Assembly (NCBI GenBank): GCA_964057225.1
Contig: OZ059894.1
Location: 4,216,001 to 4,280,000 of the forward strand
DNA: 64,000 nucleotides
Direction: 5' to 3'
Origin: Auanema rhodensis
Lineage: Eukaryota; Animalia; Nematoda
The translations under genes and the position numbers were made by a program. Below the pieces are notes generated by a model. It saw nothing but the letters and a program-made list of their open reading frames with translations. It was not told where the DNA came from and ran no database searches. Below, one piece after another: positions 1 to 64,000 of this stretch; position 1 is the first letter of the stretch; the number at the start of each line of letters is the position of its first letter.

Positions 1-3000
1 TTTTTGTCAAAATGTTTTTGGAAGCAATGTTGAGTGTACATGGAAACTCAACATACACTAATGCATCATTTTTCAAACGATCATAACTAATTTTTGTATC
101 AAGCGTTTCTTAATGTAGTATAGTGCATTCGATGCGGATTTTTAAGCTGCGTCGATCTGTGTTATCAGATTTGCGCTAGCTTAAAAATGCACCGAGATAT
201 CAACTGATATAAGTTCACACTTATATCCTCGATTTTCACCCTGAAGAATTAACTTTTTCGTTGAATAACATTGTCTATCGTCTTTGCCTTGAAAAATGGA
301 ATCTAAAAACATCTACTATTTGCTAAATTATTTTGAAATTTTTCGAAAAAATTTTTGTCAAAATGTTTTTGGAAGCAATGTTGAGTGTACATGGAAACTC
401 AACATACACTAATGCATCATTTTTCAAACGATCATAACTAATTTTTGTATCAAGCGTTTTTCAATGTAGTATAGTGCATTCGATGCGGATTTTTAAGCTG
501 CGTCGATCTGTGTTATCAGATTTGCGCTAGCTTAAAAATGCACCGAGATATCAACTGATATAAAATCACACTTATATCCTCGATTTTCACCCTGAAGAAA
601 TAATTTTTTCGTTGAATAACATTGTCCATCGTCTTTGCCTTGAAAAATGGAATCTAAAAACATCTACTTTTTGCTAAATTATTTTGAAATTTTTCGAAAC
701 AATTTTTGTCAAAATGTTTTTGGAAGCAATGTTGAGTGTACATGGAAACTCAACATACACTAATGCATCATTTTTCAAACGATCATAACTAATTTTTGTA
801 TCAAGTGTTTCTCAATGTAATATAGTGCATTCGATGCGGATTTTTAAGCTGCGTCGATCTGTGTTATCAGATTTGCGCTAGCTTAAAAATGCACCGAGAT
901 ATCAACTGATATAAGTTCACACTTATATCCTCGATTTTCACCCCGAAGAATTAATTTTTTCGTTGAATAACATTGTCCATCGTCTTTGCCTTGAAAAATG
1001 GAATCTAAAAACATCTACTTTTTGCTAAATTATTTTGAAATGTTTCGAAACAATTTTTGTCAAAATGTTTTTGGAAGCAATGTTGAGTGTACATGGAAAC
1101 TCAACATACACTAATGCATCATTTTTCAAACGATCATAACTAATTTTTGTATCAAGCGTTTCTTAATGTAGTATAGTGCATTCGATGCGGATTTTTAAGC
1201 TGCGTCGATCTGTGTTATCAGATTTGCGCTAGCTTAAAAATGCACCGAGATATCAACTGATATAAGTTCACACTTATATCCTCGATTTTCACCCCGAAGA
1301 ATTAATTTTTTCGTTGAATAACATTGTCCATCGTCTTTGCCTTGAAAAATGGAATCTAAAAACATCTACTTTTTGCTAAATTATTTTGAAATTTTTCGAA
1401 ACAATTTTTGTCAAAATGTTTTTGGAAGCAATGTTGAGTGTACATGGAAACTCAACATACACTAATGCATCATTTTTCAAACGATCATAACTAATTTTTG
1501 TATCAAGCGTTTCTTAATGTAGTATAGTGCATTCGATGCGGATTTTTAAGCTGCGTCGATCTGTGTTATCAGATTTGCGCTAGCTTAAAAATGCACCGAG
1601 ATATCAACTGATATAAGTTCACACTTATATCCTCGATTTTCACCCTGAAGAATTAACTTTTTCGTTGAATAACATTGTCTATCGTCTTTGCCTTGAAAAA
1701 TGGAATCTAAAAACATCTACTATTTGCTAAATTATTTTGAAATTTTTCGAAAAAATTTTTGTCAAAATGTTTTTGGAAGCAATGTTGAGTGTACATGGAA
1801 ACTCAACATACACTAATGCATCATTTTTCAAACGATCATAACTAATTTTTGTATCAAGCGTTTTTCAATGTAGTATAGTGCATTCGATGCGGATTTTTAA
1901 GCTGCGTCGATCTGTGTTATCAGATTTGCGCTAGCTTAAAAATGCACCGAGATATCAACTGATATAAGTTCACACTTATATCCTCGATTTTCACCCTGAA
2001 GAAATAATTTTTTCGTTGAATATTATTGTCCATCGTCTTTGCCTTAAAAAAAGGAATCTAAAAACATCTACTTTTTGCTAAATTATTTTGAAATTTTTCG
2101 AAAAAATTTTTGTCAAAATGTTTTTGGAAGCAATGTTGAGTGTACATGGAAACTCAACATACACTAATGCATCATTTTTCAAAAGATCATAACTAATTTT
2201 TGTATCAAGCGTTTCTCAATGTAGTATAGTGCGTTCGATGCAGATTTTTAAGCTGCGTCGATCTGTGTTATCAGATTTGCGCTAGCTTAAAAATGCACCG
2301 AGATATCAACTGATATAAGTTCACACTTATATCCTCGATTTTCACCCTGAAGAATTAATTTTTTCGTTGAATAACATTGTCCATCGTCTTTGCCTTGAAA
2401 AATGGAATCTAAAAACATCTACTTTTTGCTAAATTATTCTGAAATTTTTCGAAACAATTTTTGTCAAAATGTTTTTGGAAGCAATGTTGAGTGTACATGG
2501 AAACTCAACATACACTAATGCATCATTTTTCTAACGATCATAACTAATTTTTGTATTAAGCTTTACTCAATGTAGTATAGTGCATTCGATGCAGATTTTT
2601 AAGCTGCGTCGATCTGTGTTATCAGATTTGCGCTAGCTTAAAAATGCACCGAGATATCAACTGATATAAGTTCACACTTATATCCTCGATTTTCACCCTG
2701 AAGAATTAATTTTTTCGTTGAATAACATTGTCCATCGTCTTTGCCTTGAAAAATGGAATCTAAAAACATCTACTTTTTGCTAAATTATTTTGAAATTTTT
2801 CGAAACAATTTTTGTCAAAATGTTTTTGGAAGCAATGTTGAGTGTACATGGAAACTCAACATACACTAATGCATCATTTTTCAAACGATCATAACTAATT
2901 TTTGTATCAAGCGTTTCTTAATGTAGTATAGTGCATTCGATGCGGATTTTTAAGCTGCGTCGATCTGTGTTATCAGATTTGCGCTAGCTTAAAAATGCAC

Positions 3001-3916
3001 CGAGATATCAACTGATATAAGTTCACACTTATATCCTCGATTTTCACCCTGAAGAAATAATTTTTTCGTTGAATAACATTGTCCATCGTCTTTGCCTTGG
3101 AAAAAGGAATCTAAAAACATTTAATTTTTGCTGAATTATTTTGAAATTTTTCGAAAAAATTTTTGTCAAAATGTTTTTGGAAGCAATGTTGAGTGTACAT
3201 GGAAACTCAACATACACTAATGCATCATTTTTCTAACGATCATAACTAATTTTTGTATTAAGCTTTTCTCAATGTAGTATAGTGCATTCGATGCAGATTT
3301 TTAAGCTGCGTCGATCTGTGTTATCAGATTTGCGCTAGCTTAAAAATGCACCGAGATATCAACTGATATAAGTTCACACTTATATCCTCGATTTTCACCC
3401 TGAAGAATTAACTTTTTCGTTGAATAACATTGTCTATCGTCTTTGCCTTGAAAAATGGAATCTAAAAACATCTACTATTTGCTAAATTATTTTGAAATTT
3501 TTCGAAAAAATTTTTGTCAAAATGTTTTTGGAAGCAATGTTGAGTGTACATGGAAACTCAACATACACTAATGCATCATTTTTCAAACGATCATAACTAA
3601 TTTTTGTATCAAGCGTTTTTCAATGTAGTATAGTGCATTCGATGCGGATTTTTAAGCTGCGTCGATCTGTGTTATCAGATTTGCGCTAGCTTAAAAATGC
3701 ACCGAGATATCAACTGATATAAGTTCACACTTATATCCTCGATTTTCACCCTGAAGAAATAATTTTTTCGTTGAATATTATTGTCCATCGTCTTTGCCTT
3801 AAAAAAAGGAATCTAAAAACATCTACTTTTTGCTAAATTATTTTGAAATTTTTCGAAAAAATTTTTGTCAAAATGTTTTTGGAAGCAATGTTGAGTGTAC
3901 ATGGAAACTCAACATA
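1..3916. repeat. 351-bp tandem satellite array, left arm (about 11 monomers; continues beyond window start)
   Basis: TTTTTGTCAAAATG recurs at 1, 352, 703 and onward (period 351). Monomers differ only by scattered substitutions. The array stops inside ...CTCAACATA at the retroelement junction. Confidence 0.99.
3912..3916 (+). other. Left target-site duplication ACATA
   Basis: The satellite reads CTCA-ACATA-CACTA, and ACATA flanks the element on both sides. A 6-bp AACATA reading is formally possible if the LTR ends one base earlier. Confidence 0.9.
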
Positions 3917-4234
3917 TGTTTCGTATATTATACGAAATTTAATGAAAGTAACGGAGAAACTATTAAAAAAGTGAGAATTCATTAAATATTAAAATCATCC
4001 TGAAAAGAAATTATTCATTAATCATTTATTCTCATTTGGTTTGAGAAAACCGGTTGAATACGCGTCACGTCATAAGCGCGTGAAATTGACGTAACGAGGA
4101 CTAAAAAGTTATCTTTCAGTTCACATAGTTGGCTCATAGCGCGTAGTCGCATATTTAATAATATATATCGTGATTCATAAAATATTTCTTATAAATAAAT
4201 CATTTTCATTATATTTCGTTTTAATTTCGAGATA
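3917..4234 (+). repeat. 5' LTR (318 bp, TGTTTCG...CGAGATA)
   Basis: Matches 12393-12710 with no difference seen by eye. Contains an Inr-like TCAGTT (4116-4121), AATAAA (4194-4199) and a CGTCAC/ACGT motif cluster (about 4061-4097). Confidence 0.96.
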
Positions 4235-4241
4235 TAAAAAG

Positions 4242-4264
4242 TGGTGCATCGGCCGGGAAACGAA
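4242..4264 (+). promoter_or_regulatory. Primer-binding site copy 1, complementary to the 3' end of tRNA-Gly(GCC), extended into the T-loop
   Basis: TGGTGCATCGGCCGGGAA is the reverse complement of TTCCCGGCCGATGCACCA, the invertebrate tRNA-Gly(GCC) 3' end as I recall it. It is followed by A-CGAA where the tRNA complement would be T-CGAA. Confidence 0.88.
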
Positions 4265-4757
4265 TCTTTTAATTTCGATTTTTTCGTTTTCGATCTTTTT
4301 ATATAAGGTTTTCCATACTGATTGTTGTTTTTCTGGTATTAGTTCGTCCCATCCTATTTTGGAATCCCAAATTTCTTTCAAAAATAACCTTAGTTTTAAT
4401 GTTAGAGGTTGTGTTATACCGAGAGGGTCGAATATTGAGTTTATATAGCTCAAAATTCCTCTTTTGGTTATAGACTTCTCTTCCCATTTGGGTATTTTTA
4501 TTAATAAAACATCTTTTTCACCGTTGTAATGCATTCCTAGTATTTTGAAGCTTGTTTCTTTAATCTGGTCTTTGATTGGGATCATGTCTTTTTGAATTAC
4601 ATCATTAGTATAAAATTCTCTAACGTTCATTCCTATTTTTGAAAATAAATTTTTTACTTCCTCATAAAATTTGAAAATTTGATCTTTATTTTCAATTTTC
4701 AGCATTATGTTGTCCACATAAATGTTTCTTAATATATTTTCTGAGATTTCACTTTTT
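4265..4757 (-). repeat. Inverted copy A of the element's own pol (corresponds to 8832-9324, RT C-terminal half including YVDN)
   Basis: Reverse complement of 8832-9324. ORF 4175..4717(-) translates identically to the polyprotein stretch DNIMLKIENK...KIEIKR. Confidence 0.96.
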
Positions 4758-5494
4758 CTGCATTTTAGTGATGAAAATTAGAACTTGGCGAATTATGTTA
4801 ATGAACTTTGAATACGATGAAAAAGTTTGTGCCAAGAAATCTAAATCTTGATTCTCAGCTGGATTCATTTCAGATTTTAACAACAAAGTCACTATTTTTA
4901 GTTGTGGTTCATCACAATACTTTTCTATAACTTCTTTCAATGTTTTTATGTGCAAATTTCGTTCTTTTTCTGCTTTATACCATTGAGGACCTTCGATCCA
5001 TTGCATATATGTTTCATCGGGTTTTTCTAAACCTCTCGTAGGTAAATCGGCAGGATTAAACTTTGTATTCACATAAAAAAATTCAATTTTTCGGTTTCCT
5101 TGTTCAATTTCGGTTATTAATTCTGTTATTTTGTTCAATCTGTTCCGTATATATATTTTTTTCGTTGGATTCTTATGTAACCAACATAGAACAACTTGTG
5201 AATCAGTGAAAATTTTAATATTTTTGATTTTTACGTTTATTTCTTTGATATTTTCTTTTAACATTTTCATTCCGAAAAGAACAGCAGTTAGTTCTTTCAT
5301 TGGTATGGTTCCTTCAACCATTGTCGATGATTTAGAGCATAAAAAATCTATTTTTTCAATTTTTCCATGAATATTTATACTCATCACATATGCGACGGCC
5401 GCTATGACATCTTTAGACGCGTCAGTGAATAATAAAAATTCATATTTTTGAGATGTATCGCTTGTTTCATCGATAATTGCTCTTTTAATTTCGA
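4753..5494 (-). repeat. Inverted copy B of the element's own pol (corresponds to 9311-10052, RNase H domain)
   Basis: Reverse complement of 9311-10052. ORF 4749..5537(-) translates identically to the polyprotein stretch EIKRAIIDETSD...ITKMQK. Confidence 0.96.
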
Positions 5495-5517
5495 GATATA
5501 AAAAGTGGTGCATCGGC
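5483..5517 (+). promoter_or_regulatory. Second copy of LTR 3' end + spacer + short (12-nt) PBS
   Basis: TTTTAATTTCGAGATATAAAAAGTGGTGCATCGGC is identical to 4219-4253. The PBS part, TGGTGCATCGGC, lies at 5506-5517 and is followed by the gag leader. Confidence 0.93.
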
Positions 5518-5625
5518 AAATCTAGAATCACAAACATAAAAGAAATATCAATTCCAAAAATAAGATCAATTCTTAAACAGAGAATAAACTTATAAAATTA
5601 ATTGGAAAAAAAATTATAAGCTGAA

Positions 5626-8600: not shown

Positions 8601-11571
8601 AAGACTCAGAATGAGTAGAAACTTCTTAATAGGGGACATAGAGAAAGCGTTCCACCAAATAGAATTAGACGAAAGTCATAGAGATTTAACAAGAATTTTA
8701 TGGGTGAAAGACATTCACAAAGGAACGCAGAAAAGTAACATTCTAAACTTACGATTTACAAGAATACCTTTTGGAGTGAACAGTTCACCATTTCTATTAG
8801 CAGCAAGCATAATTTATTTTTTAAAAACGGAAAAAAGTGAAATCTCAGAAAATATATTAAGAAACATTTATGTGGACAACATAATGCTGAAAATTGAAAA
8901 TAAAGATCAAATTTTCAAATTTTATGAGGAAGTAAAAAATTTATTTTCAAAAATAGGAATGAACGTTAGAGAATTTTATACTAATGATGTAATTCAAAAA
9001 GACATGATCCCAATCAAAGACCAGATTAAAGAAACAAGCTTCAAAATACTAGGAATGCATTACAACGGTGAAAAAGATGTTTTATTAATAAAAATACCCA
9101 AATGGGAAGAGAAGTCTATAACCAAAAGAGGAATTTTGAGCTATATAAACTCAATATTCGACCCTCTCGGTATAACACAACCTCTAACATTAAAACTAAG
9201 GTTATTTTTGAAAGAAATTTGGGATTCCAAAATAGGATGGGACGAACTAATACCAGAAAAACAACAATCAGTATGGAAAACCTTATATAAAAAGATCGAA
9301 AACGAAAAAATCGAAATTAAAAGAGCAATTATCGATGAAACAAGCGATACATCTCAAAAATATGAATTTTTATTATTCACTGACGCGTCTAAAGATGTCA
9401 TAGCGGCCGTCGCATATGTGATGAGTATAAATATTCATGGAAAAATTGAAAAAATAGATTTTTTATGCTCTAAATCATCGACAATGGTTGAAGGAACCAT
9501 ACCAATGAAAGAACTAACTGCTGTTCTTTTCGGAATGAAAATGTTAAAAGAAAATATCAAAGAAATAAACGTAAAAATCAAAAATATTAAAATTTTCACT
9601 GATTCACAAGTTGTTCTATGTTGGTTACATAAGAATCCAACGAAAAAAATATATATACGGAACAGATTGAACAAAATAACAGAATTAATAACCGAAATTG
9701 AACAAGGAAACCGAAAAATTGAATTTTTTTATGTGAATACAAAGTTTAATCCTGCCGATTTACCTACGAGAGGTTTAGAAAAACCCGATGAAACATATAT
9801 GCAATGGATCGAAGGTCCTCAATGGTATAAAGCAGAAAAAGAACGAAATTTGCACATAAAAACATTGAAAGAAGTTATAGAAAAGTATTGTGATGAACCA
9901 CAACTAAAAATAGTGACTTTGTTGTTAAAATCTGAAATGAATCCAGCTGAGAATCAAGATTTAGATTTCTTGGCACAAACTTTTTCATCGTATTCAAAGT
10001 TCATTAACATAATTCGCCAAGTTCTAATTTTCATCACTAAAATGCAGAAAAATATCGGAAAAACAAGTCAAAATCTGCTTGAGAATTTTTATGAAAAAGA
10101 TACGTTGACAAAAAACAAAATGATTCAACAACTTCTAATAAAATGTCATCAAAACCAAAACAGCAATTTGCTTAAAAAAGAAAAATACAAGAAATTGGAT
10201 ATAATTACAGATGATTCTGGAATATTAAGAGTGCGAGGCCGATTAGGCAACTCAGAAAATAGTAACAAACAGTATCCAATTCTTCTTTTTGGAAAAAAAA
10301 CATTCACTAAACTCATTCTTACTCACATTCATGAGACATCGCTTCATAGTTCGCGAGAAACCATGATGGCAATAGTAAGAAGAGAATTTTTCATCATAAA
10401 ACTTAAAACATGCATAAATACAGTAATTTCAAAATGTTTAAAATGTAAAAAATTAAATAATAGGCCATATAAATACCCAAATTATCCTCAATTACCAAAA
10501 GAAAGAGTCCTAATATATAAACCTTTCGAAAATATAGGTATTGATTACGCCGGTCCGTTATTAGTAAAAACAAATAGTAATTATGACAAGAAGGTTTGGA
10601 TTATGTTAATTACTTGCCTGTGTACACGAGCAGTATATTTGGATTTAGCCAATGATTGCTCCAGTAAAGAATTAACACTAAATCTGAGAAAATTTTTTGC
10701 TCGAAAACGAGTACCAACAAAAATAATATCAGATAACGGCAGTCAGTTTATAAAAACTGATAAAATTCTCGAAACTTTCATTGAAAAAAAGCATGTAAAC
10801 TGGCAAAAAATAACTCCTTATTCACCATGGAAAGGAGGATTTTATGAAAGATTGATTGGAGTAACAAAAAAGTACTTAATAAAAACACTTGGAACAAGAA
10901 CAGTTTATTTCAATGAATTAAGTACAATTTTAACAGAAATTGAAAATATAATAAATTCGAGACCTATATCGTACATACATGACGATTTTGACAAAATAAT
11001 AACTCCTAAAAGTCTAGAGTACTACCATTCAGAAAACCTCATTTGCGAATTCTCGGATAATGCAAAGAAAACAAATTTATCTCAAATTAACGAAATAAAA
11101 GACTGGATGAGTATTTGCAATAGAACTATTTCGGAATTTTGGAGAGAATGGTCTTTAACTTACCTTGAAGAACTAAGAGCATTATCTAACAAGAGTGCTA
11201 TCAACAAAAACTGTAATAAAACAAATCCCAAAGTTGGTGAAATTGTTTTATGCATTGAAAATAACGTAAAAAGACACAAATGGCCACTTGCAATTATTGA
11301 AGAATTGATATATTCGCAAGATGGAGAGATCAGAACCGTCAAAATTAGAAATTCTGAAGGGAATCGATTTCTCAGATCTATTAATCATCTCATCCCTCTG
11401 GAAATATCAGAAAATACACCAAATAACGAAGAAAATCATAGAATAAACAGTGAATCATTGCAAAATCATGAAAAAAGTAATGAACCAAAAAATATAAAAG
11501 AGGATAATCCAGAATTATGGAAAAATAGACTTCGGAATATCGAAAAAATTGACTACACTATGTTCTTTTAG
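5626..11571 (+). CDS. gag-pol: BEL/Pao Gag-Pol polyprotein, 1981 aa (Gag with three Zn knuckles, aspartic protease, reverse transcriptase, RNase H, integrase)
   Basis: Uninterrupted ORF. Gag region KFDGEIKKFKEFY (DUF1759-like). Knuckles CIYCRMDNHDTKYC, CWICFSKKHSSFEC, CEICNGRHHQSIC (about 7150-7338). Protease LFDTCS (about 7645). RT motifs YYIPHH, KLRIVLNAS, DIEKAFHQI, RIPFGVNSSPFLL and YVDN (8869-8880). Pao-type IFDPLG. RNase H FTDAS/ELTA/FTDSQ/NPADLPTRG. Integrase HETSLH..CLKC, IDYAGP, SDNGSQF, GGFYERLIG, and C-terminal FWREWSLTYL/WPLAIIEEL. Confidence 0.97.
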   Translation: MSSQGNKNDNSAYKSAIQRKINCTLARREKIKIIFDSDLNEMEVYLPEIKEYLNYFVRFMESVISLRIEEDFPIIKEKVENSIIIENWEIIKNEIYFIAKNINSDIQSASREEIKLCIRNFKLNEKDFLEAINQKDLIEIEEEPSDNEEETQFSSEEDLESEYEKLSQRFTPTNFKINQLKSKHAKCVYQTPIKKGTPNLIISPRAKQTVQYKENDLLSKIKQLTNNLNELKTKYNEEIGKTHKKCVIHKRTEKYESNEEYNTESDEENISYGKNKHKIMKNEGFKPKMELQKFDGEIKKFKEFYNMFKMLIHNNKKITKLEKLYYLKTSLTGFPSQLLEHISLEANNYAKALKLLKDTFDRPYEIKKDLKMELSNVRKSYNNPIHARENFYKIKSIISALEEYENVDNDEIIEIIKSKFDIEINTKISEIEITEKRRMNIEDVLKCIEIKIEAGIAATKNSKSEKYEHRSTINFLTNSNKERKPKTIKNYNRMNENNYSPTKQIEKTCIYCRMDNHDTKYCRKLKPISEKRNIIMQNKVCWICFSKKHSSFECKEKPCEICNGRHHQSICIKNQYANEQTTLKNNRNAYANEGTPNQNERKYYANEERPETSTNRWQSRTIRAKFSNNEKCNRKGIIRTNLLSENINNTEKNRNNTFFISFFKTYHKNLVILFDTCSHQSFIKEKTAKLLNLKILNEKSLSISSINNNIKNISSREVMWDIPEVKKAVKLMSIDQITKYVNMPILNEEDIKEIKAYKLKSNTLLFEKGLVEPDILIGMDNFFDFVPKTFKSINIRNDLIIIPTIIHPIIAQSDCNDSNSKESVQNEDISCFLNGISLNNDNKKATKEEIRKYEDKMAWKHFYDNVQYVNDRIKVKFPIRPDVQSINDNYGKSIGCLNGILNTMKDKTDILMKYNETMMEQMKTGILEIAPEQNHPFFTYYIPHHYVLKLSSLTTKLRIVLNASSKKKNEKSLNDILYQGEGIIPSLAGMLIRLRMSRNFLIGDIEKAFHQIELDESHRDLTRILWVKDIHKGTQKSNILNLRFTRIPFGVNSSPFLLAASIIYFLKTEKSEISENILRNIYVDNIMLKIENKDQIFKFYEEVKNLFSKIGMNVREFYTNDVIQKDMIPIKDQIKETSFKILGMHYNGEKDVLLIKIPKWEEKSITKRGILSYINSIFDPLGITQPLTLKLRLFLKEIWDSKIGWDELIPEKQQSVWKTLYKKIENEKIEIKRAIIDETSDTSQKYEFLLFTDASKDVIAAVAYVMSINIHGKIEKIDFLCSKSSTMVEGTIPMKELTAVLFGMKMLKENIKEINVKIKNIKIFTDSQVVLCWLHKNPTKKIYIRNRLNKITELITEIEQGNRKIEFFYVNTKFNPADLPTRGLEKPDETYMQWIEGPQWYKAEKERNLHIKTLKEVIEKYCDEPQLKIVTLLLKSEMNPAENQDLDFLAQTFSSYSKFINIIRQVLIFITKMQKNIGKTSQNLLENFYEKDTLTKNKMIQQLLIKCHQNQNSNLLKKEKYKKLDIITDDSGILRVRGRLGNSENSNKQYPILLFGKKTFTKLILTHIHETSLHSSRETMMAIVRREFFIIKLKTCINTVISKCLKCKKLNNRPYKYPNYPQLPKERVLIYKPFENIGIDYAGPLLVKTNSNYDKKVWIMLITCLCTRAVYLDLANDCSSKELTLNLRKFFARKRVPTKIISDNGSQFIKTDKILETFIEKKHVNWQKITPYSPWKGGFYERLIGVTKKYLIKTLGTRTVYFNELSTILTEIENIINSRPISYIHDDFDKIITPKSLEYYHSENLICEFSDNAKKTNLSQINEIKDWMSICNRTISEFWREWSLTYLEELRALSNKSAINKNCNKTNPKVGEIVLCIENNVKRHKWPLAIIEELIYSQDGEIRTVKIRNSEGNRFLRSINHLIPLEISENTPNNEENHRINSESLQNHEKSNEPKNIKEDNPELWKNRLRNIEKIDYTMFF
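7351..7476 (+). repeat. Degenerate 42-bp (14-aa) triple repeat in the Gag-protease linker
   Basis: TATGCTAATGA at 7351, 7393 and 7435, giving YANE three times at 14-aa spacing. Confidence 0.8.
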
Positions 11572-11727
11572 CTATAACAACATTGAATTAAATTAAATTT
11601 TGTAGATGAATAGTGTAGTTTCTAGAATAAAAAAAAAAAAAAAATATATATATATTAATTTTAAATAAAAAGTAATTCAAATTATGTGAAGAGAGTTAAT
11701 CGGTCGTTTTTTTTGCGGCGGATGATT

Positions 11728-11819
11728 CGTGACACGTCATAACGTTACGTGAACGTCACGTAAAGTCACGCAACCAGAAATAGTATATAAAGAAAAGAAT
11801 CTAACAGAAAAATTCATTT
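11728..11819 (+). promoter_or_regulatory. Putative internal Pol II promoter for the 3' accessory gene
   Basis: Cluster of CGTGAC/ACGTCA/GTCACG motifs (11728-11772), TATATAAA at 11784-11791, Inr-like TCATTT at 11814-11819 about 30 nt downstream, then ATG at 11823. Confidence 0.6.
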
Positions 11820-11822
11820 CTC

Positions 11823-12325
11823 ATGAAGGAACAGAACGAAATCATGAATGATTATGAAGAACTACTTCTGGAGGAAGGAATTGAAGAAAACCAAGCAACC
11901 ACCGACAATCTCATAGAAAGAATATCTTTTCTGGAGAAACACGTGGTTACTATGTGTGAAGCACTGAAGAAATTGAATGATATTTACTCTGAAAAACGAG
12001 AGATAAGTAGTAAACAACCAGAAAAGGTATATAATTTAATAATAAACAACTTATAAATAACAAAAAATTATTTAAGAAAGATGGTACATCAACTATAACA
12101 TATAAACCGAAGGCATACTGCAAACTCTGTAAAAAAGAACACAACACCGAAAAATGTTCCCAACATCCATCTAAACTTTCTAAGTTTACCAAAGCAGTCT
12201 CTATGAAGTTATGCTTACTCTGTCTTAACAGACATAAAGGAGATTGCACAAAAGCAAAAATTTGTAAATTTTGTAATTTGAAGCAGTATAATTTTATTAT
12301 CTGCCCATGTACCAAACGAAAATAA
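11823..12325 (+). CDS. Predicted two-exon accessory protein, 150 aa (acidic/coiled-coil-like N-terminus + Cys/His Zn-knuckle-like C-terminus); exons 11823-12026 and 12077-12325
   Basis: Donor AAG|GTATAT at 12027 and acceptor TTTAAG| at 12076 define a 50-nt AT-rich phase-0 intron containing the exon-1 stop. Exon 2 reads KDGTSTITYKPKAYCKLCKKEHNTEKCSQHPSKLSKFTKAVSMKLCLLCLNRHKGDCTKAKICKFCNLKQYNFIICPCTKRK*. AATAAA at 12321 and 12340. Confidence 0.7.
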
Positions 12326-12392
12326 ACATTTTTAAATGAAATAAAATGAATTCTTTCGTGAAACATATTAAAAAACCCGATTCGGGCTGGAA

Positions 12393-12710
12393 TGTTTCGT
12401 ATATTATACGAAATTTAATGAAAGTAACGGAGAAACTATTAAAAAAGTGAGAATTCATTAAATATTAAAATCATCCTGAAAAGAAATTATTCATTAATCA
12501 TTTATTCTCATTTGGTTTGAGAAAACCGGTTGAATACGCGTCACGTCATAAGCGCGTGAAATTGACGTAACGAGGACTAAAAAGTTATCTTTCAGTTCAC
12601 ATAGTTGGCTCATAGCGCGTAGTCGCATATTTAATAATATATATCGTGATTCATAAAATATTTCTTATAAATAAATCATTTTCATTATATTTCGTTTTAA
12701 TTTCGAGATA
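12393..12710 (+). repeat. 3' LTR (318 bp)
   Basis: Direct repeat of 3917-4234, followed by the TSD and resumption of the satellite in register. Confidence 0.96.
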
Positions 12711-12715
12711 ACATA
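12711..12715 (+). other. Right target-site duplication ACATA
   Basis: ...CGAGATA|ACATA|CACTAATGC; the satellite continues exactly where it was interrupted. Confidence 0.9.
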
Positions 12716-15700
12716 CACTAATGCATCATTTTTCAAAAGATCATAACTAATTTTTGTATCAAGCGTTTCTCAATGTAGTATAGTGCGTTCGATGCGGATT
12801 TTTAAGCTGCGTCGATCTGTGTTATCAGATTTGCGCTAGCTTAAAAATGCACCGAGATATCAACTGATATAAGTTCACACTTATATCCTCGATTTTCACC
12901 CTGAAGAATTAATTTTTTCGTTGAATAACATTGTCCATCGTCTTTGCCTTGAAAAATGGAATCTAAAAACATCTACTTTTTGCTAAATTATTTTGAAATT
13001 TTTCGAAACAATTTTTGTCAAAATGTTTTTGGAAGCAATGTTGAGTGTACATGGAAACTCAACATACACTAATGCATCATTTTTCTAACGATCATAACTA
13101 ATTTTTGTATTAAGCTTTTCTCAATGTAGTATAGTGCATTCGATGCAGATTTTTAAGCTGCGTCGATCTGTGTTATCAGATTTGCGCTAGCTTAAAAATG
13201 CACCGAGATATCAACTGATATAAGTTCACACTTATATCCTCGATTTTCACCCTGAAGAATTAACTTTTTCGTTGAATAACATTGTCTATCGTCTTTGCCT
13301 TGAAAAATGGAATCTAAAAACATCTACTATTTGCTAAATTATTTTGAAATTTTTCGAAAAAATTTTTGTCAAAATGTTTTTGGAAGCAATGTTGAGTGTA
13401 CATGGAAACTCAACATACACTAATGCATCATTTTTCAAACGATCATAACTAATTTTTGTATCAAGCGTTTTTCAATGTAGTATAGTGCATTCGATGCGGA
13501 TTTTTAAGCTGCGTCGATCTGTGTTATCAGATTTGCGCTAGCTTAAAAATGCACCGAGATATCAACTGATATAAGTTCACACTTATATCCTCGATTTTCA
13601 CCCTGAAGAAATAATTTTTTCGTTGAATATTATTGTCCATCGTCTTTGCCTTAAAAAAAGGAATCTAAAAACATCTACTTTTTGCTAAATTATTTTGAAA
13701 TTTTTCGAAAAAATTTTTGTCAAAATGTTTTTGGAAGCAATGTTGAGTGTACATGGAAACTCAACATACACTAATGCATCATTTTTCAAAAGATCATAAC
13801 TAATTTTTGTATCAAGCGTTTCTCAATGTAGTATAGTGCGTTCGATGCGGATTTTTAAGCTGCGTCGATCTGTGTTATCAGATTTGCGCTAGCTTAAAAA
13901 TGCACCGAGATATCAACTGATATAAGTTCACACTTATATCCTCGATTTTCACCCTGAAGAATTAATTTTTTCGTTGAATAACATTGTCCATCGTCTTTGC
14001 CTTGAAAAATGGAATCTAAAAACATCTACTTTTTGCTAAATTATTTTGAAATTTTTCGAAACAATTTTTGTCAAAATGTTTTTGGAAGCAATGTTGAGTG
14101 TACATGGAAACTCAACATACACTAATGCATCATTTTTCTAAAGATCATAACTAATTTTTGTATTAAGCTTTTCTCAATGTAGTATAGTGCATTCGATGCA
14201 GATTTTTAAGCTGCGTCGATCTGTGTTATCAGATTTGCGCTAGCTTAAAAATGCACCGAGATATCAACTGATATAAGTTCACACTTATATCCTCGATTTT
14301 CACCCTGAAGAAATAATTTTTTCGTTGAATAACATTGTCCATCGTCTTTGCCTTGAAAAATGGAATCTAAAAACATCTACTTTTTGCTAAATTATCTTGA
14401 AATTTTTCGAAACAATTTTTGTCAAAATGTTTTTGGAAGCAATGTTGAGTGTACATGGAAACTCAACATACACTAATGCATCATTTTTCAAACGATCATA
14501 ACTAATTTTTGTATCAAGCGTTTCTTAATGTAGTATAGTGCATTCGATGCGGATTTTTAAGCTGCGTCGATCTGTGTTATCAGATTTGCGCTAGCTTAAA
14601 AATGCACCGAGATATCAACTGATATAAGTTCACACTTATATCCTCGATTTTCACCCTGAAGAAATAATTTTTTCGTTGAATATTATTGTCCATCGTCTTT
14701 GCCTTAAAAAAAGGAATCTAAAAACATCTACTTTTTGCTAAATTATTTTGAAATTTTTCGAAAAAATTTTTGTCAAAATGTTTTTGGAAGCAATGTTGAG
14801 TGTACATGGAAACTCAACATACACTAATGCATCATTTTTCAAAAGATCATAACTAATTTTTGTATCAAGCGTTTCTCAATGTAGTATAGTGCGTTCGATG
14901 CGGATTTTTAAGCTGCGTCGATCTGTGTTATCAGATTTGCGCTAGCTTAAAAATGCACCGAGATATCAACTGATATAAGTTCACACTTATATCCTCGATT
15001 TTCACCCTGAAGAATTAATTTTTTCGTTGAATAACATTGTCCATCGTCTTTGCCTTGAAAAATGGAATCTAAAAACATCTACTTTTTGCTAAATTATTTT
15101 GAAATTTTTCGAAACAATTTTTGTCAAAATGTTTTTGGAAGCAATGTTGAGTGTACATGGAAACTCAACATACACTAATGCATCATTTTTCTAAAGATCA
15201 TAACTAATTTTTGTATTAAGCTTTTCTCAATGTAGTATAGTGCATTCGATGCAGATTTTTAAGCTGCGTCGATCTGTGTTATCAGATTTGCGCTAGCTTA
15301 AAAATGCACCGAGATATCAACTGATATAAGTTCACACTTATATCCTCGATTTTCACCCTGAAGAAATAATTTTTTCGTTGAATAACATTGTCCATCGTCT
15401 TTGCCTTGAAAAATGGAATCTAAAAACATCTACTTTTTGCTAAATTATCTTGAAATTTTTCGAAACAATTTTTGTCAAAATGTTTTTGGAAGCAATGTTG
15501 AGTGTACATGGAAACTCAACATACACTAATGCATCATTTTTCAAACGATCATAACTAATTTTTGTATCAAGCGTTTCTTAATGTAGTATAGTGCATTCGA
15601 TGCGGATTTTTAAGCTGCGTCGATCTGTGTTATCAGATTTGCGCTAGCTTAAAAATGCACCGAGATATCAACTGATATAAGTTCACACTTATATCCTCGA

Positions 15701-18700
15701 TTTTCACCCTGAAGAAATAATTTTTTCGTTGAATAACATTGTCCATCGTCTTTGCCTTGAAAAATGGAATCTAAAAACATCTACTTTTTGCTAAATTATT
15801 TTGAAATTTTTCGAAACAATTTTTGTCAAAATGTTTTTGGAAGCAATGTTGAGTGTACATGGAAACTCAACATACACTAATGCATCATTTTTCTAACGAT
15901 CATAACTAATTTTTGTATTAAGCTTTTCTCAATGTAGTATAGTGCATTCGATGCAGATTTTTAAGCTGCGTCGATCTGTGTTATCAGATTTGCGCTAGCT
16001 TAAAAATGCACCGAGATATCAACTGATATAAGTTCACACTTATATCCTCGATTTTCACCCTGAAGAATTAATTTTTTCGTTGAATAACATTGTCCATCGT
16101 CTTTGCCTTGAAAAATGGAATCTAAAAACATCTACTTTTTGCTAAATTATTTTGAAATTTTTCGAAACAATTTTTGTCAAAATGTTTTTGGAAGCAATGT
16201 TGAGTGTACATGGAAACTCAACATACACTAATGCATCATTTTTCAAACGATCATAACTAATTTTTGTATCAAGCGTTTCTTAATGTAGTATAGTGCATTC
16301 GATGCGGATTTTTAAGCTGCGTCGATCTGTGTTATCAGATTTGCGCTAGCTTAAAAATGCACCGAGATATCAACTGATATAAGTTCACACTTATATCCTC
16401 GATTTTCACCCTGAAGAAATAATTTTTTCGTTGAATAACATTGTCCATCGTCTTTGCCTTGAAAAAAGGAATCTAAAAACATTTAATTTTTGCTGAATTA
16501 TTTTGAAATTTTTCGAAAAAATTTTTGTCAAAATGTTTTTGGAAGCAATGTTGAGTGTACATGGAAACTCAACATACACTAATGCATCATTTTTCTAACG
16601 ATCATAACTAATTTTTGTATTAAGCTTTTCTCAATGTAGTATAGTGCATTCGATGCAGATTTTTAAGCTGCGTCGATCTGTGTTATCAGATTTGATCAAA
16701 ATGTTTTTGGAAGCAATGTTGAGTGTACATGGAAACTCAACATACACTAATGCATCATTTTTCAAACGGTCATAACTAATTTTTGTATCAAGCGTTTCTT
16801 AATGTAGTATAGTGCATTCGATCCGGATTTTTAAGCTGCGTCAATCTGTGTTATCAGATTTGCGCTAGCTTAAAAATGCACCGAGATATCAACTGATATA
16901 AGTTCACACTTATATCCTCGATTTTCACCCTGAAGAAATAATTTTTTCGTTGAATAACATTGTCCATCGTCTTTGCCTTGAAAAAAGGAATCTAAAAACA
17001 TCTACTTTTTGCTAAATTATTTTGAAATTTTTCGAAAAAATTTTTGTCAAAATGTTTTTGGAAGCAATGTTGAGTGTACATGGAAACTCAACATACACTA
17101 ATGCATCATTTTTCTAACGATCATAACTAATTTTTGTATTAAGCTTTTCTCAATGTAGTATAGTGCATTCGATGCGGATTTTTGAGCTGCGTCGATCTGT
17201 GTTATCAGATTTGCGCTAGCTTAAAAATGCACCGAGATATCAACTGATATAAGTTCACACTTATATCCTCGATTTTCACCCTGAAGAATTAATTTTTTCG
17301 TTGAATAACATTGTCCATCGTCTTTGCCTTGAAAAATGGAATCTTAAAACATCTACTTTTTGCTAAATTATTTTGAAATTTGTCGAAAAAATTTTTGTCA
17401 AAATGTTTTTGGAAGCAATGTTGAGTGTACATGGAAACTCAACATACACTAATGCATCATTTTTCAAACGATCATAACTAATTTTTGTATCAAGTGTTTC
17501 TCAATGTAATATAGTGCATTCGATGCGGATTTTTAAGCTGCGTCGATCTGTGTTATCAGATTTGCGCTAGCTTAAAAATGCACCGAGATATCAACTGATA
17601 TAAGTTCACACTTATATCCTCGATTTTCACCCTGAAGAATTAATTTTTTCGTTGAATAACATTGTCCATCGTCTTTGCCTTGAAAAATGGAATCTAAAAA
17701 CATCTACTTTTTGCTAAATTATTTTGAAATTTTTCGAAACAATTTTTGTCAAAATGTTTTTGGAAGCAATGTTGAGTGTACATGGAAACTCAACATACAC
17801 TAATGCATCATTTTTCAAACGATCATAACTAATTTTTGTATCAAGCGTTTCTCAATGTAGTATAGTGCGTTCGATGCGGATTTTTAAGCTGCGTCGATCT
17901 GTGTTATCAGATTTGCGCTAGCTTAAAAATGCACCGAGATATCAACTGATATAAGTTCACACTTATATCCTCGATTTTCACCCTGAAGAATTAATTTTTT
18001 CGTTGAATAACATTGTCCATCGTCTTTGCCTTGAAAAATGGAATCTAAAAACATCTACTTTTTGCTAAATTATTTTGAAATTTTTCGAAACAATTTTTGT
18101 CAAAATGTTTTTGGAAGCAATGTTGAGTGTACATGGAAACTCAACATACACTAATGCATCATTTTTCTAACGATCATAACTAATTTCTGTATTAAGCTTT
18201 TCTCAATGTAGTATAGTGCATTCGATGCAGATTTTTAAGCTGCGTCGATCTGTGTTATCAGATTTGCGCTAGCTTAAAAATGCACCGAGATATCAACTGA
18301 TATAAGTTCACACTTATATCCTCGATTTTCACCCTGAAGAATTAATTTTTTCGTTGAATAACATTGTCCATCGTCTTTGCCTTGAAAAATGGAATCTAAA
18401 AACATCTACTTTTTGCTAAATTATTTTGAAATTTTTCGAAACAATTTTTGTCAAAATGTTTTTGGAAGCAATGTTGAGTGTACATGGAAACTCAACATAC
18501 ACTAATGCATCATTTTTCAAACGATCATAACTAATTTTTGTATCAAGCGTTTCTTAATGTAGTATAGTGCATTCGATGCGGATTTTTAAGCTGCGTCGAT
18601 CTGTGTTATCAGATTTGCGCTAGCTTAAAAATGCACCGAGATATCAACTGATATAAGTTCACACTTATATCCTCGATTTTCACCCTGAAGAATTAACTTT

Positions 18701-21700
18701 TTCGTTGAATAACATTGTCTATCGTCTTTGCCTTGAAAAAAGGAATCTAAAAACATCTACTTTTTGCTAAATTATTTTGAAATTTTTCGAAAAAATTTTT
18801 GTCAAAATGTTTTTGGAAGCAATGTTGAGTGTACATGGAAACTCAACATACACTAATGCATCATTTTTCAAACGGTCATAACTAATTTTTGTATCAAGCG
18901 TTTCTTAATGTAGTATAGTGCATTCGATCCGGATTTTTAAGCTGCGTCAATCTGTGTTATCAGATTTGCGCTAGCTTAAAAATGCACCGAGATATCAACT
19001 GATATAAGTTCACACTTATATCCTCGATTTTCACCCTGAAGAAATAATTTTTTCGTTGAATAACATTGTCCATCGTCTTTGCCTTGAAAAAAGGAATCTA
19101 AAAACATCTACTTTTTGCTAAATTATTTTGAAATTTTTCGAAAAAATTTTTGTCAAAATGTTTTTGGAAGCAATGTTGAGTGTACATGGAAACTCAACAT
19201 ACACTAATGCATCATTTTTCTAACGATCATAACTAATTTTTGTATTAAGCTTTTCTCAATGTAGTATAGTGCATTCGATGCGGATTTTTGAGCTGCGTCG
19301 ATCTGTGTTATCAGATTTGCGCTAGCTTAAAAATGCACCGAGATATCAACTGATATAAGTTCACACTTATATCCTCGATTTTCACCCTGAAGAATTAATT
19401 TTTTCGTTGAATAACATTGTCCATCGTCTTTGCCTTGAAAAATGGAATCTTAAAACATCTACTTTTTGCTAAATTATTTTGAAATTTGTCGAAAAAATTT
19501 TTGTCAAAATGTTTTTGGAAGCAATGTTGAGTGTACATGGAAACTCAACATACACTAATGCATCATTTTTCAAACGATCATAACTAATTTTTGTATCAAG
19601 TGTTTCTCAATGTAATATAGTGCATTCGATGCGGATTTTTAAGCTGCGTCGATCTGTATTATCAGATTTGCGCTAGCTTAAAAATGCACCGAGATATCAA
19701 CTGATATAAGTTCACACTTATATCCTCGATTTTCACCCTGAAGAATTAATTTTTTCGTTGAATAACATTGTCCATCGTCTTTGCCTTGAAAAATGGAATC
19801 TAAAAACATCTACTTTTTGCTAAATTATTTTGAAATTTTTCGAAACAATTTTTGTCAAAATGTTTTTGGAAGCAATGTTGAGTGTACATGGAAACTCAAC
19901 ATACACTAATGCATCATTTTTCAAACGGTCATAACTAATTTTTGTATCAAGCGTTTCTTAATGTAGTATAGTGCATTCGATCCGGATTTTTAAGTTGCGT
20001 CGATCTGTGTTATCAGATTTGCGCTAGCTTAAAAATGCACCGAGATATCAACTGATATAAGTTCACACTTATATCCTCGATTTTCACCCTGAAGAATTAA
20101 TTTTTTCGTTGAATAACATTGTCCATCGTCTTTGCCTTGAAAAATGGAATCTAAAAACATCTACTATTTGCTAAATTATTTTGAAATTTTTCGAAAAAAT
20201 TTTTGTCAAAATGTTTTTGGAAGCAATGTTGAGTGTACATGGAAACTCAACATACACTAATGCATCATTTTTCAAACGATCATAACTAATTTTTGTATTA
20301 AGCGTTTCTCAATGTAGTATAGTGCATTCGATGCGGATTTTTAAGCTGCGTCGATCTGTGTTATCAGATTTGCGCTAGCTTAAAAATGCACCGAGATATC
20401 AACTGATATAAGTTCACACTTATATCCTCGATTTTCACCCTGAAGAATTAACTTTTTCGTTGAATAACATTGTCCATCGTCTTTGCCTTGAAAAAAGGAA
20501 TCTAAAAACATCTACTTTTTGCTAAATTATTTTGAAATTTTTCGAAAAAATTTTTGTCAAAATGTTTTTGGAAGCAATGTTGAGTGTACATGGAAACTCA
20601 ACATACACTAATGCATCATTTTTCTAACGATCATAACTAATTTTTGTATTAAGCTTTTCTCAATGTAGTGTAGTGCATTCGATGCGAATTTTTAAGCTGC
20701 GTCGATCTGTGTTATCAGATTTGCGCTAGCTTAAAAATGCACCGAGATATCAACTGATATAAGTTCACACTTATATCCTCGATTTTCACCCTGAAGAAAT
20801 AATTTTTTCGTTGAATAACATTGTCCATCGTCTTTGCCTTGAAAAAAGGAATCTAAAAACATCTACTTTTTGCTAAATTATTTTGAAATTTTTCGAAAAA
20901 ATTTTTGTCAAAATGTTTTTGGAAGCAATGTTGAGTGTACATGGAAACTCAACATACACTAATGCATCATTTTTCTAACGATCATAACTAATTTTTGTAT
21001 TAAGCTTTTCTCAATGTAGTATAGTGCATTCGATGCGGATTTTTGAGCTGCGTCGATCTGTGTTATCAGATTTGCGCTAGCTTAAAAATGCACCGAGATA
21101 TCAACTGATATAAGTTCACACTTATATCCTCGATTTTCACCCTGAAGAATTAATTTTTTCGTTGAATAACATTGTCCATCGTCTTTGCCTTGAAAAATGG
21201 AATCTTAAAACATCTACTTTTTGCTAAATTATTTTGAAATTTGTCGAAAAAATTTTTGTCAAAATGTTTTTGGAAGCAATGTTGAGTGTACATGGAAACT
21301 CAACATACACTAATGCATCATTTTTCAAACGATCATAACTAATTTTTGTATCAAGTGTTTCTCAATGTAATATAGTGCATTCGATGCGGATTTTTAAGCT
21401 GCGTCGATCTGTGTTATCAGATTTGCGCTAGCTTAAAAATGCACCGAGATATCAACTGATATAAGTTCACACTTATATCCTCGATTTTCACCCTGAAGAA
21501 TTAATTTTTTCGTTGAATAACATTGTCCATCGTCTTTGCCTTGAAAAAAGGAATCTAAAAACTTCTACTTTTTGCTAAATTATTTTGAAATTTTTCGAAA
21601 CAATTTTTGTCAAAATGTTTTTGGAAGCAATGTTGAGTGTACATGGAAACTCAACATACACTAATGCATCATTTTTCAAACGGTCATAACTAATTTTTGT

Positions 21701-24700
21701 ATCAAGCGTTTCTTAATGTAGTATAGTGCATTCGATCCGGATTTTTAAGTTGCGTCGATCTGTGTTATCAGATTTGCGCTAGCTTAAAAATGCACCGAGA
21801 TATCAACTGATATAAGTTCACACTTATATCCTCGATTTTCACCCTGAAGAATTAATTTTTTCGTTGAATAACATTGTCCATCGTCTTTGCCTTGAAAAAT
21901 GGAATCTAAAAACATCTACTATTTGCTAAATTATTTTGAAATTTTTCGAAAAAATTTTTGTCAAAATGTTTTTGGAAGCAATGTTGAGTGTACATGGAAA
22001 CTCAACATACACTAATGCATCATTTTTCAAACGATCATAACTAATTTTTGTATTAAGCGTTTCTCAATGTAGTATAGTGCATTCGATGCGGATTTTTAAG
22101 CTGCGTCGATCTGTGTTATCAGATTTGCGCTAGCTTAAAAATGCACCGAGATATCAACTGATATAAGTTCACACTTATATCCTCGATTTTCACCCTGAAG
22201 AAATAATTTTTTCGTTGAATAACATTGTCCATCGTCTTTGCCTTGAAAAAAGGAATCTAAAAACATCTACTTTTTGCTAAATTATTTTGAAATTTTTCGA
22301 AAAAATTTTTGTCAAAATGTTTTTGGAAGCAATGTTGAGTGTACATGGAAACTCAACATACACTAATGCATCATTTTTCAAACGGTCATAACTAATTTTT
22401 GTATCAAGCGTTTCTTAATGTAGTATAGTGCATTCGATCCGGATTTTTAAGTTGCGTCGATCTGTGTTATCAGATTTGCGCTAGCTTAAAAATGCACCGA
22501 GATATCAACTGATATAAGTTCACACTTATATCCTCGATTTTCACCCTGAAGAATTAATTTTTTCGTTGAATAACATTGTCCATCGTCTTTGCCTTGAAAA
22601 ATGGAATCTAAAAACATCTACTATTTGCTAAATTATTTTGAAATTTTTCGAAAAAATTTTTGTCAAAATGTTTTTGGAAGCAATGTTGAGTGTACATGGA
22701 AACTCAACATACACTAATGCATCATTTTTCAAACGATCATAACTAATTTTTGTATTAAGCGTTTCTCAATGTAGTATAGTGCATTCGATGCGGATTTTTA
22801 AGCTGCGTCGATCTGTGTTATCAGATTTGCGCTAGCTTAAAAATGCACCGAGATATCAACTGATATAAGTTCACACTTATATCCTCGATTTTCACCCTGA
22901 AGAAATAATTTTTTCGTTGAATAACATTGTCCATCGTCTTTGCCTTGAAAAAAGGAATCTAAAAACATCTACTTTTTGCTAAATTATTTTGAAATTTTTC
23001 GAAAAAATTTTTGTCAAAATGTTTTTGGAAGCAATGTTGAGTGTACATGGAAACTCAACATACACTAATGCATCATTTTTCTAACGATCATAACTAATTT
23101 TTGTATTAAGCTTTTCTCAATGTAGTATAGTGCATTCGATGCGAATTTTTAAGCTGCGTCGATCTGTGTTATCAGATTTGCGCTAGCTTAAAAATGCACC
23201 GAGATATCAACTGATATAAGTTCACACTTATATCCTCGATTTTCACCCTGAAGAATTAATTTTTTCGTTGAATAACATTGTCCATCGTCTTTGCCTTGAA
23301 AAATGGAATCTTAAAACATCTACTTTTTGCTAAATTATTTTGAAATTTTTCGAAAAAATTTTTGTCAAAATGTTTTTGGAAGCAATGTTGAGTGTACATG
23401 GAAACTCAACATACACTAATGCATCATTTTTCAAACGATCATAACTAATTTTTGTATCAAGTGTTTCTCAATGTAATATAGTGCATTCGATGCGGATTTT
23501 TAAGCTGCGTCGATCTGTGTTATCAGATTTGCGCTAGCTTAAAAATGCACCGAGATATCAACTGATATAAGTTCACACTTATATCCTCGATTTTCACCCT
23601 GAAGAATTAATTTTTTCGTTGAATAACATTGTCCATCGTCTTTGCCTTGAAAAATGGAATCTAAAAACATCTACTTTTTGCTAAATTATTTTGAAATTTT
23701 TCGAAACAATTTTTGTCAAAATGTTTTTGGAAGCAATGTTGAGTGTACATGGAAACTCAACATACACTAATGCATCATTTTTCAAACGGTCATAACTAAT
23801 TTTTGTATCAAGCGTTTCTTAATGTAGTATAGTGCATTCGATCCGGATTTTTAAGCTGCGTCAATCTGTGTTATCAGATTTGCGCTAGCTTAAAAATGCA
23901 CCGAGATATCAACTGATATAAGTTCACACTTATATCCTCGATTTTCACCCCGAAGAATTAATTTTTTCGTTGAATAACATTGTCCATCGTCTTTGCCTTG
24001 AAAAATGGAATCTAAAAACATCTACTTTTTGCTAAATTATTTTGAAATTTTTCGAAACAATTTTTGTCAAAATGTTTTTGGAAGCAATGTTGAGTGTACA
24101 TGGAAACTCAACATACACTAATGCATCATTTTTCAAACGGTCATAACTAATTTTTGTATCAAGCGTTTCTTAATGTAGTATAGTGCATTCGATCCGGATT
24201 TTTAAGCTGCGTCGATCTGTGTTATCAGATTTGCGCTAGCTTAAAAATGCACCGAGATATCAACTGATATAAGTTCACACTTATATCCTCGATTTTCACC
24301 CTGAAGAATTAATTTTTTCGTTGAATAACATTGTCCATCGTCTTTGCCTTGAAAAATGGAATCTAAAAACATCTACTTTTTGCTAAATTATTTTGAAATT
24401 TTTCGAAACAATTTTTGTCAAAATGTTTTTGGAAGCAATGTTGAGTGTACATGGAAACTCAACATACACTAATGCATCATTTTTCAAACGGTCATAACTA
24501 ATTTTTGTATCAAGCGTTTCTTAATGTAGTATAGTGCATTCGATCCGGATTTTTAAGCTGCGTCAATCTGTGTTATCAGATTTGCGCTAGCTTAAAAATG
24601 CACCGAGATATCAACTGATATAAGTTCACACTTATATCCTCGATTTTCACCCCGAAGAATTAATTTTTTCGTTGAATAACATTGTCCATCGTCTTTGCCT

Positions 24701-63700: not shown

Positions 63701-64000
63701 ATTTTGAAATTTTTCGAAACAATTTTTGTCAAAATGTTTTTGGAAGCAATGTTGAGTGTACATGGAAACTCAACATACACTAATGCATCATTTTTCAAAC
63801 GGTCATAACTAATTTTTGTATCAAGCGTTTCTTAATGTAGTATAGTGCATTCGATCCGGATTTTTAAGCTGCGTCAATCTGTGTTATCAGATTTGCGCTA
63901 GCTTAAAAATGCACCGAGATATCAACTGATATAAGTTCACACTTATATCCTCGATTTTCACCCTGAAGAAATAATTTTTTCGTTGAATAACATTGTCCAT
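12711..64000. repeat. 351-bp tandem satellite array, right arm (about 146 monomers; continues beyond window end)
   Basis: Same monomer and orientation as the left arm. Period 351 holds except for one 168-bp truncated monomer (junction about 16695) and a 1-bp deletion near 60137. Confidence 0.99.

Follow-up and report, generated by a model that had tools for sequence, protein, structure and literature searches.

The window, by which we mean the whole 64-kb stretch of DNA that was analyzed, is made up of a mobile element and the satellite into which it was inserted. Positions 3917-12710 are an LTR retrotransposon of the BEL/Pao type, and all of the window outside these positions is a 351-bp satellite (Table 1). 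Satellite units are about 97% identical and have a G+C content of 31%, with a half-unit (168-bp) irregularity near 16524-16862; a literature search for this satellite gave no matching paper. The arrangement described below for 3917-12710 carries the caveat that assemblies of satellite DNA, such as surrounds it, are prone to error.

Table 1. Coordinates of the features in the window. Columns are as follows. "Strand": orientation relative to the forward strand. "Remarks": size, similarity, or relation to other features.
Feature	Position	Strand	Remarks
351-bp satellite array, left flank	1..3916		TRF, 97% matches between units; phase comparison
Target-site duplication, left, 5 bp	3912..3916	+	same 5-mer recurs at 12711-12715
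5' LTR	3917..4234	+	318 bp; 318/318 identical to 12393-12710
7-nt spacer between LTR and PBS	4235..4241	+	follows the 5' LTR; absent behind the 3' LTR
PBS copy 1, 12 nt common to copy 2	4242..4253	+	tRNA positions 76-65
tRNA-only extension, 11 nt	4254..4264	+	tRNA positions 64-54; agrees with fetched genes for tRNA-Gly(GCC) at 10/11
Inverted copy of 8832-9324 (pol)	4265..4757	-	493 nt, 100% complementary
Inverted copy of 9311-10052 (pol)	4753..5494	-	742 nt, 100% complementary; 5-nt A-run overlap with the preceding arm
Second copy of the LTR's last 16 nt and the 7-nt spacer	5483..5505	+	23 nt shared with 4219-4241
PBS copy 2, 12 nt	5506..5517	+	runs on into leader and gag
Leader	5518..5625	+	from PBS copy 2 up to the ORF start
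gag-pol ORF, 1981 codons	5626..11571	+	from the ORF list; 0 stops, 0 frameshifts
Source segment of the inverted duplicate	8832..10052	+	about aa 1070-1476: RT end, Peptidase_A17/RNase H-like region, and the stretch beyond
Internal 12-mer	9311..9322	-	same 12 nt as at 4219-4230, close to the LTR end; provides the homology of one junction
pol-to-3'-LTR region	11572..12392	+	small ORFs; a purine-rich stretch abutting the LTR is a putative PPT
3' LTR	12393..12710	+	318/318 identical to the 5' LTR
Target-site duplication, right, 5 bp	12711..12715	+	the satellite unit contains the 5-mer once
351-bp satellite array, right flank	12711..64000		TRF

The gag-pol ORF matches, in order, Pfam DUF1759, DUF1758, RVT_1, Peptidase_A17, integrase domains and DUF5641. 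This domain order is the BEL/Pao architecture (gag, protease, RT, Peptidase_A17, integrase, DUF5641). Peptidase_A17 is detected at 2.3e-39, and Integrase_H2C2 is present, with rve below the cut-off. Other features expected of a BEL/Pao element are also found, namely a direct LTR pair (318/318) with a short target-site duplication (5 bp), and, after the 5' LTR, 12 nt that match the 3' end of tRNA-Gly(GCC), including its CCA. Since the gag-pol ORF has neither stops nor frameshifts, no gene of the element is broken. A search of a protein collection for the exact polyprotein gave no match. The insertion is very young, and the target duplication together with the satellite phase indicates that the element integrated normally.

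Several other characteristics of the element were recorded. Its LTR termini (3917; 4234/12710) are TGT...ATA, as compared with TG...CA. The spacer between LTR and PBS in retroviruses is usually 0-2 nt, and the 7 nt of this element are longer. A comparison of the LTR with the internal upstream region gave similarity within the range of shuffled sequences. At the other end, about 820 nt separate the pol stop from the 3' LTR. An A run followed by (TA)n occupies 11625-11655, directly past the gag-pol stop; farther on are a 77-codon ORF with coiled-coil-like character (11823-12056) and a frame (12077-12322) with Cys/His knuckle-like spacing and a faint likeness to gag aa 511-575 (E=2). Upstream of these small ORFs lie motifs of the ACGTCA type and a TATA-like box, and 11572-12392 could possibly hold an accessory gene with its own promoter. 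When the two pieces were searched separately, the small ORFs past pol gave no significant family match and no significant likeness to gag.

The element carries two copies of its PBS. The PBS 12-mer occurs exactly twice in the 64 kb, against 0.06 occurrences expected when up to one mismatch is allowed. The sequence duplicated at the two sites is 35 nt long, comprising 23 nt leftward and 12 nt from the TGG onward, and the first 12 nt of the leftward part at the second site (5483-5505) double as the end of an inverted arm. At the first site, the similarity to the tRNA goes on beyond these 12 nt. Positions 4242-4264 complement positions 76-54 of tRNA-Gly(GCC) at 22/23, and the sole mismatch, an A at 4260 in place of T, lies opposite A58. 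At least 10 matches among the 11 nt of the extension have a probability of 3.6e-6 by chance, given the base composition of the element. The last A, at 4264, is either templated by T54 or untemplated, and in the latter case the tRNA copy is 22 nt rather than 23. Unlike the 23-nt form, the 12-nt form (copy 2) is continuous with leader and gag. As judged from this single copy of the element, the 12-nt form is probably the native PBS. RNA folds around both PBS copies were no better than those of shuffled sequences, and thus do not help in deciding which of the two contexts is native.

The identity of the tRNA was tested on fetched tRNA genes. We used as a pattern the reverse complement of 4245-4264, with N at position 58, and scanned metagenome contigs with it. 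The N position is A in 123 of 127 matches. Among these matches, 111 lie in tRNA-Gly(GCC) genes called by ARAGORN, and A is at position 58 in every one (111/111). These reference genes come from eukaryotes in metagenomes and may differ from those of the host. In published data from Drosophila, the 3' fragment of GlyGCC is printed starting with A58, and GlyTCC differs from GlyGCC inside the 12-mer (PMC4572633). An earlier note on this DNA, which worked from the sequence without database searches, had described a 23-mer (4242-4264) and a 12-mer (5506-5517), and both read as it claimed. Its match of 22/23 to positions 76-54 of tRNA-Gly(GCC), with a lone mismatch at 58, is confirmed on the fetched genes, which come from metagenomes rather than the host.

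The scan also returned sequences of other kinds. One metagenome match, the only one with T58, was considered as a copy of the element and rejected; its flanks are unrelated, and no tRNA was called there. Three contigs have a tRNA-Gly-derived 3' half with G at 58 in SINE-like contexts, and another three contain intron-bearing tRNA-Gly-like genes of 88-90 nt. No copy of the element was found among the by-catch of the metagenome scan. The possibility that the 23-mer is part of a tRNA gene or pseudogene was likewise dismissed, as neither ARAGORN nor Rfam detects a tRNA or another known RNA within the window or the element.

Between the two PBS copies lies a 1.23-kb inverted, circularly permuted duplicate of pol. 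On the minus strand, 9311-10052 comes first and 8837-9324 follows, so that a circle of 1216 nt is traversed once in full and then for another 14 nt. The three junctions differ in their homology: 12 nt where the LTR end meets the internal 12-mer, 5 nt at the A run, and 0 nt between the tRNA copy and the arm. The 12-mer of 4219-4230 and 9311-9322 occurs five times in the window, where 0.25 occurrences would be expected. No substitution separates the members of the LTR pair (318 nt) or of the inverted arms (1230 nt), making more than 1500 nt of unchanged duplicates. Minus-strand ORFs of 180 codons (4175-4717) and 262 codons (4749-5537) also occur here; they represent pol itself, read in the sense direction of the inverted copy, rather than separate genes.

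We propose that this element is the integrated product of one aberrant reverse transcription, in an element with a PBS that pairs with the 3'-terminal 12 nt of tRNA-Gly(GCC) and no further, and we assign this reading a probability of roughly 0.7. The left end consists of a complete LTR, the 7-nt spacer, and 23 nt complementary to tRNA positions 76-54. This is the composition of plus-strand strong-stop DNA that ran past its usual stop before m1A58. After LTR and spacer, the complement of the tRNA continues without a gap beyond the element's own PBS, as defined from copy 2 only. The end point of the copy, position 54 (or 55, should the last A be untemplated), is moreover a known pause site in the T loop: minor strong-stop products have been reported to end at psi55 and m5U54 (PMC13191261, PMC8599865). 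Because the LTRs are 318/318 identical and the arms are 100% identical, all of the copies are best explained by one event, and later mutation is unlikely.

The proposed sequence of events is as follows. Plus-strand strong-stop DNA would have passed m1A58, with dA inserted opposite it, and ended at T54. Once the second strand transfer had taken place, an unpaired 3' flap made of the 11 tRNA-only bases would have remained, because the element's own PBS pairs with 12 nt only. The minus strand would then have been extended by 23 nt on the strong-stop DNA, at which point its 3' end equals the internal 12-mer at 9311-9322. At this 12-mer it could have switched onto minus-strand DNA and copied 9323-10052, then jumped back by way of the 5-nt A run and copied as far as 9324, where it presumably stalled 14 nt inside the duplex left by its own first pass. 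From there, the minus strand would have changed template once more, now with no homology, onto the 3' terminus of the flap, and used the strong-stop DNA as template over its full length. Through this last step the tRNA-templated bases, with the one misincorporated at m1A58 among them, would have become part of both strands. The same step would account for the end of the second pass lying 14 nt beyond the start of the first, a coincidence that an alternative scheme driven by the plus strand leaves unexplained. The product, retaining both LTR ends, could then have integrated with its 5-bp duplication. How the junction of tRNA copy and inverted arm was formed is something that we infer, and homology at this junction is 0 nt. 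We also considered autointegration and set it aside; that process yields circles, whereas here both outer LTR ends join satellite with a target duplication.

The nature of the mismatch is consistent with read-through of a modified base. When m1A is followed by U, misincorporation of dATP is very efficient (PMC4787781). Position 59 of tRNA-Gly(GCC) is U, and the plus strand of the element has A opposite position 58. Insertion of dA opposite m1A-U thus agrees with the published preference, although this is a single event and the preference was measured with other reverse transcriptases (PMC4787781). The proposal of the earlier note that copy 1 was templated by tRNA modified at m1A58 is supported by the match of the extension, the site of the mismatch, the inserted base, the end at position 54, and the identity of the duplicates. 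The site is more than a simple fossil PBS, however: the inverted, permuted pol duplicate between the two copies, which the note does not mention, points to a reverse-transcription accident with multiple switches.

The alternative to be taken most seriously has the 23-nt form, A opposite 58 included, as the normal PBS of the family, an older scar present family-wide, with copy 2 as a duplicate truncated by rearrangement. Precedents are available: a family of mouse endogenous retroviruses has a family-wide complementarity of 22 nt with a conserved mismatch at the m1A position (bioRxiv 10.1101/2025.05.12.650695), and lentiviruses have a primer over-extension sequence adjoining the PBS (PMC13191261). 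In this element, however, leader and gag are continuous with the 12-nt form. A long native PBS would also call for a fourth junction, one that deletes exactly the 11 tRNA-only bases without homology, and the 35-nt duplication stops exactly where the pairing of strong-stop DNA with a 12-nt PBS would stop. We consequently regard a long native PBS as unlikely.

A different question is which molecule served as primer. The tRNA stretch, at 22-23 nt, has the length of the tRF-3b class of 3' tRNA fragments, and the zero-homology junction resembles what synthesis running off a short template at its 5' end would leave; for these reasons, a fragment rather than a whole tRNA can be imagined as the primer, an idea that we consider doubtful. 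To our knowledge, 3' tRNA fragments have so far been regarded as inhibitors, not primers. If such a fragment did act here, the element would be a natural trace of one used as a primer.

It is also conceivable that the extension was templated by a tRNA whose A58 was unmodified, and that the A arose by ordinary polymerase error or a later point mutation. Under-modification of A58 favors read-through to psi55 (PMC13191261), and the event is a single one. Nevertheless, with 0 substitutions in the LTR pair and the inverted arms, a change at one given base is expected well below 1e-3, and the change that occurred is at the one position, and to the one base, predicted for m1A-U (PMC4787781). Given more than 1500 nt of duplicates without substitution, bypass of m1A is far more probable than a later mutation or a random error made on an unmodified tRNA, and we consider the explanation without an m1A signature very improbable. 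Hardly credible is a rearrangement after integration (for example, template switching during replication) or an assembly artifact in satellite, with the 11 bases as filler that resembles the tRNA by chance; replication-based repair does give microhomology junctions and inverted duplications, and satellite regions are difficult to assemble, but neither process provides tRNA sequence, the extension continues the tRNA complement gaplessly from the 12-nt PBS, and 10/11 matches in register with the PBS would be fortuitous at 3.6e-6.

The concept involved in the proposed aberrant reverse transcription is not new, as over-extension past m1A58, over-extension sequences, and PBS mismatches at the m1A position have already been described. 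Over-extension past m1A58 and the primer over-extension sequence are known from lentiviruses and spumaviruses (PMC13191261, PMC8599865). Stops at psi55/m5U54 have been described for HIV-1. In these viruses, as in our element, synthesis goes beyond m1A58 and terminates within the T loop, at psi55/m5U54 in the viruses and at 54 in the element. The viral cases are in vitro products or conserved tRNA-matching genome sequences, whereas the present case is one integrated BEL/Pao copy of insect type, in which position 58 is mismatched and nothing past its own 12-nt PBS matches the tRNA. In the mouse ERV ETn/MusD, an extended 22-nt PBS has a mismatch at the m1A position that its authors ascribe to misincorporation (bioRxiv 10.1101/2025.05.12.650695). 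ETn/MusD and our element share complementarity to a tRNA past the PBS and a mismatch at position 58. In ETn/MusD, however, the extension is family-wide, the tRNA is tRNA-Lys3, and the inserted base is a different one, whereas our element combines short and tRNA-templated forms, tRNA Gly(GCC), an inserted A, and a coupled inverted duplication.

Two other systems resemble the element in part. Ty1 of yeast has a short PBS, and its tRNA-copied bases were reportedly found by Lauermann and Boeke in 1994 not to be inherited. With a short PBS, as in our element, strong-stop DNA ends in bases that are unpaired with the minus strand. Unlike in Ty1, the tRNA-copied bases were retained in the element, apparently as the minus strand copied strong-stop DNA from its very end. 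The second system is cqgypsy_1 of Culex quinquefasciatus, with tRNA sequence and CCA at the LTR/PBS border and a 26-nt direct duplication of the LTR end (PMC3286476). Both cqgypsy_1 and our element thus have tRNA sequence and a duplicated LTR end at the PBS. In cqgypsy_1, two whole tRNAs lie head to head, which its authors read as SINE insertion (PMC3286476). Our element, in contrast, has a partial tRNA copy of 23 nt and its own pol inverted. Particular to this element are a single, very young BEL/Pao event, the use of tRNA-Gly(GCC), the presence of both PBS forms in one molecule, and the permuted inverted duplicate.

On the proposed reading, the element is a rare preserved record, natural and in vivo, in which a retroelement polymerase went past m1A58 and halted at T54. 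A template-derived 12-nt PBS beside a tRNA-derived 23-nt copy in one molecule constitutes an internal control, and the junctions allow an aberrant reverse transcription to be followed stepwise along its path. The element also provides a search image, namely an LTR followed by tRNA complement past the PBS of the family, together with the base opposite 58, that could be applied in genome surveys for such scars and could in this way allow past tRNA modification to be read from DNA.

The inverted duplicate may have consequences for the family as well. The perfect inverted arms (493 and 742 nt, 100% complementary) fall within one potential transcript, and transcription starting in the 5' LTR would yield an RNA with both antisense and sense pol, predicted to form a perfect 1.2-kb hairpin. 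In maize, Mu killer arose from a transposon by inverted duplication, makes hairpin RNA, and likewise has an inverted self-copy within the same transcription unit. Mu killer belongs to a plant DNA transposon, and silencing has been demonstrated for it, whereas the hairpin of our element is a prediction from the sequence. The inverted pol arm may turn this copy into a source of dsRNA against its own family.
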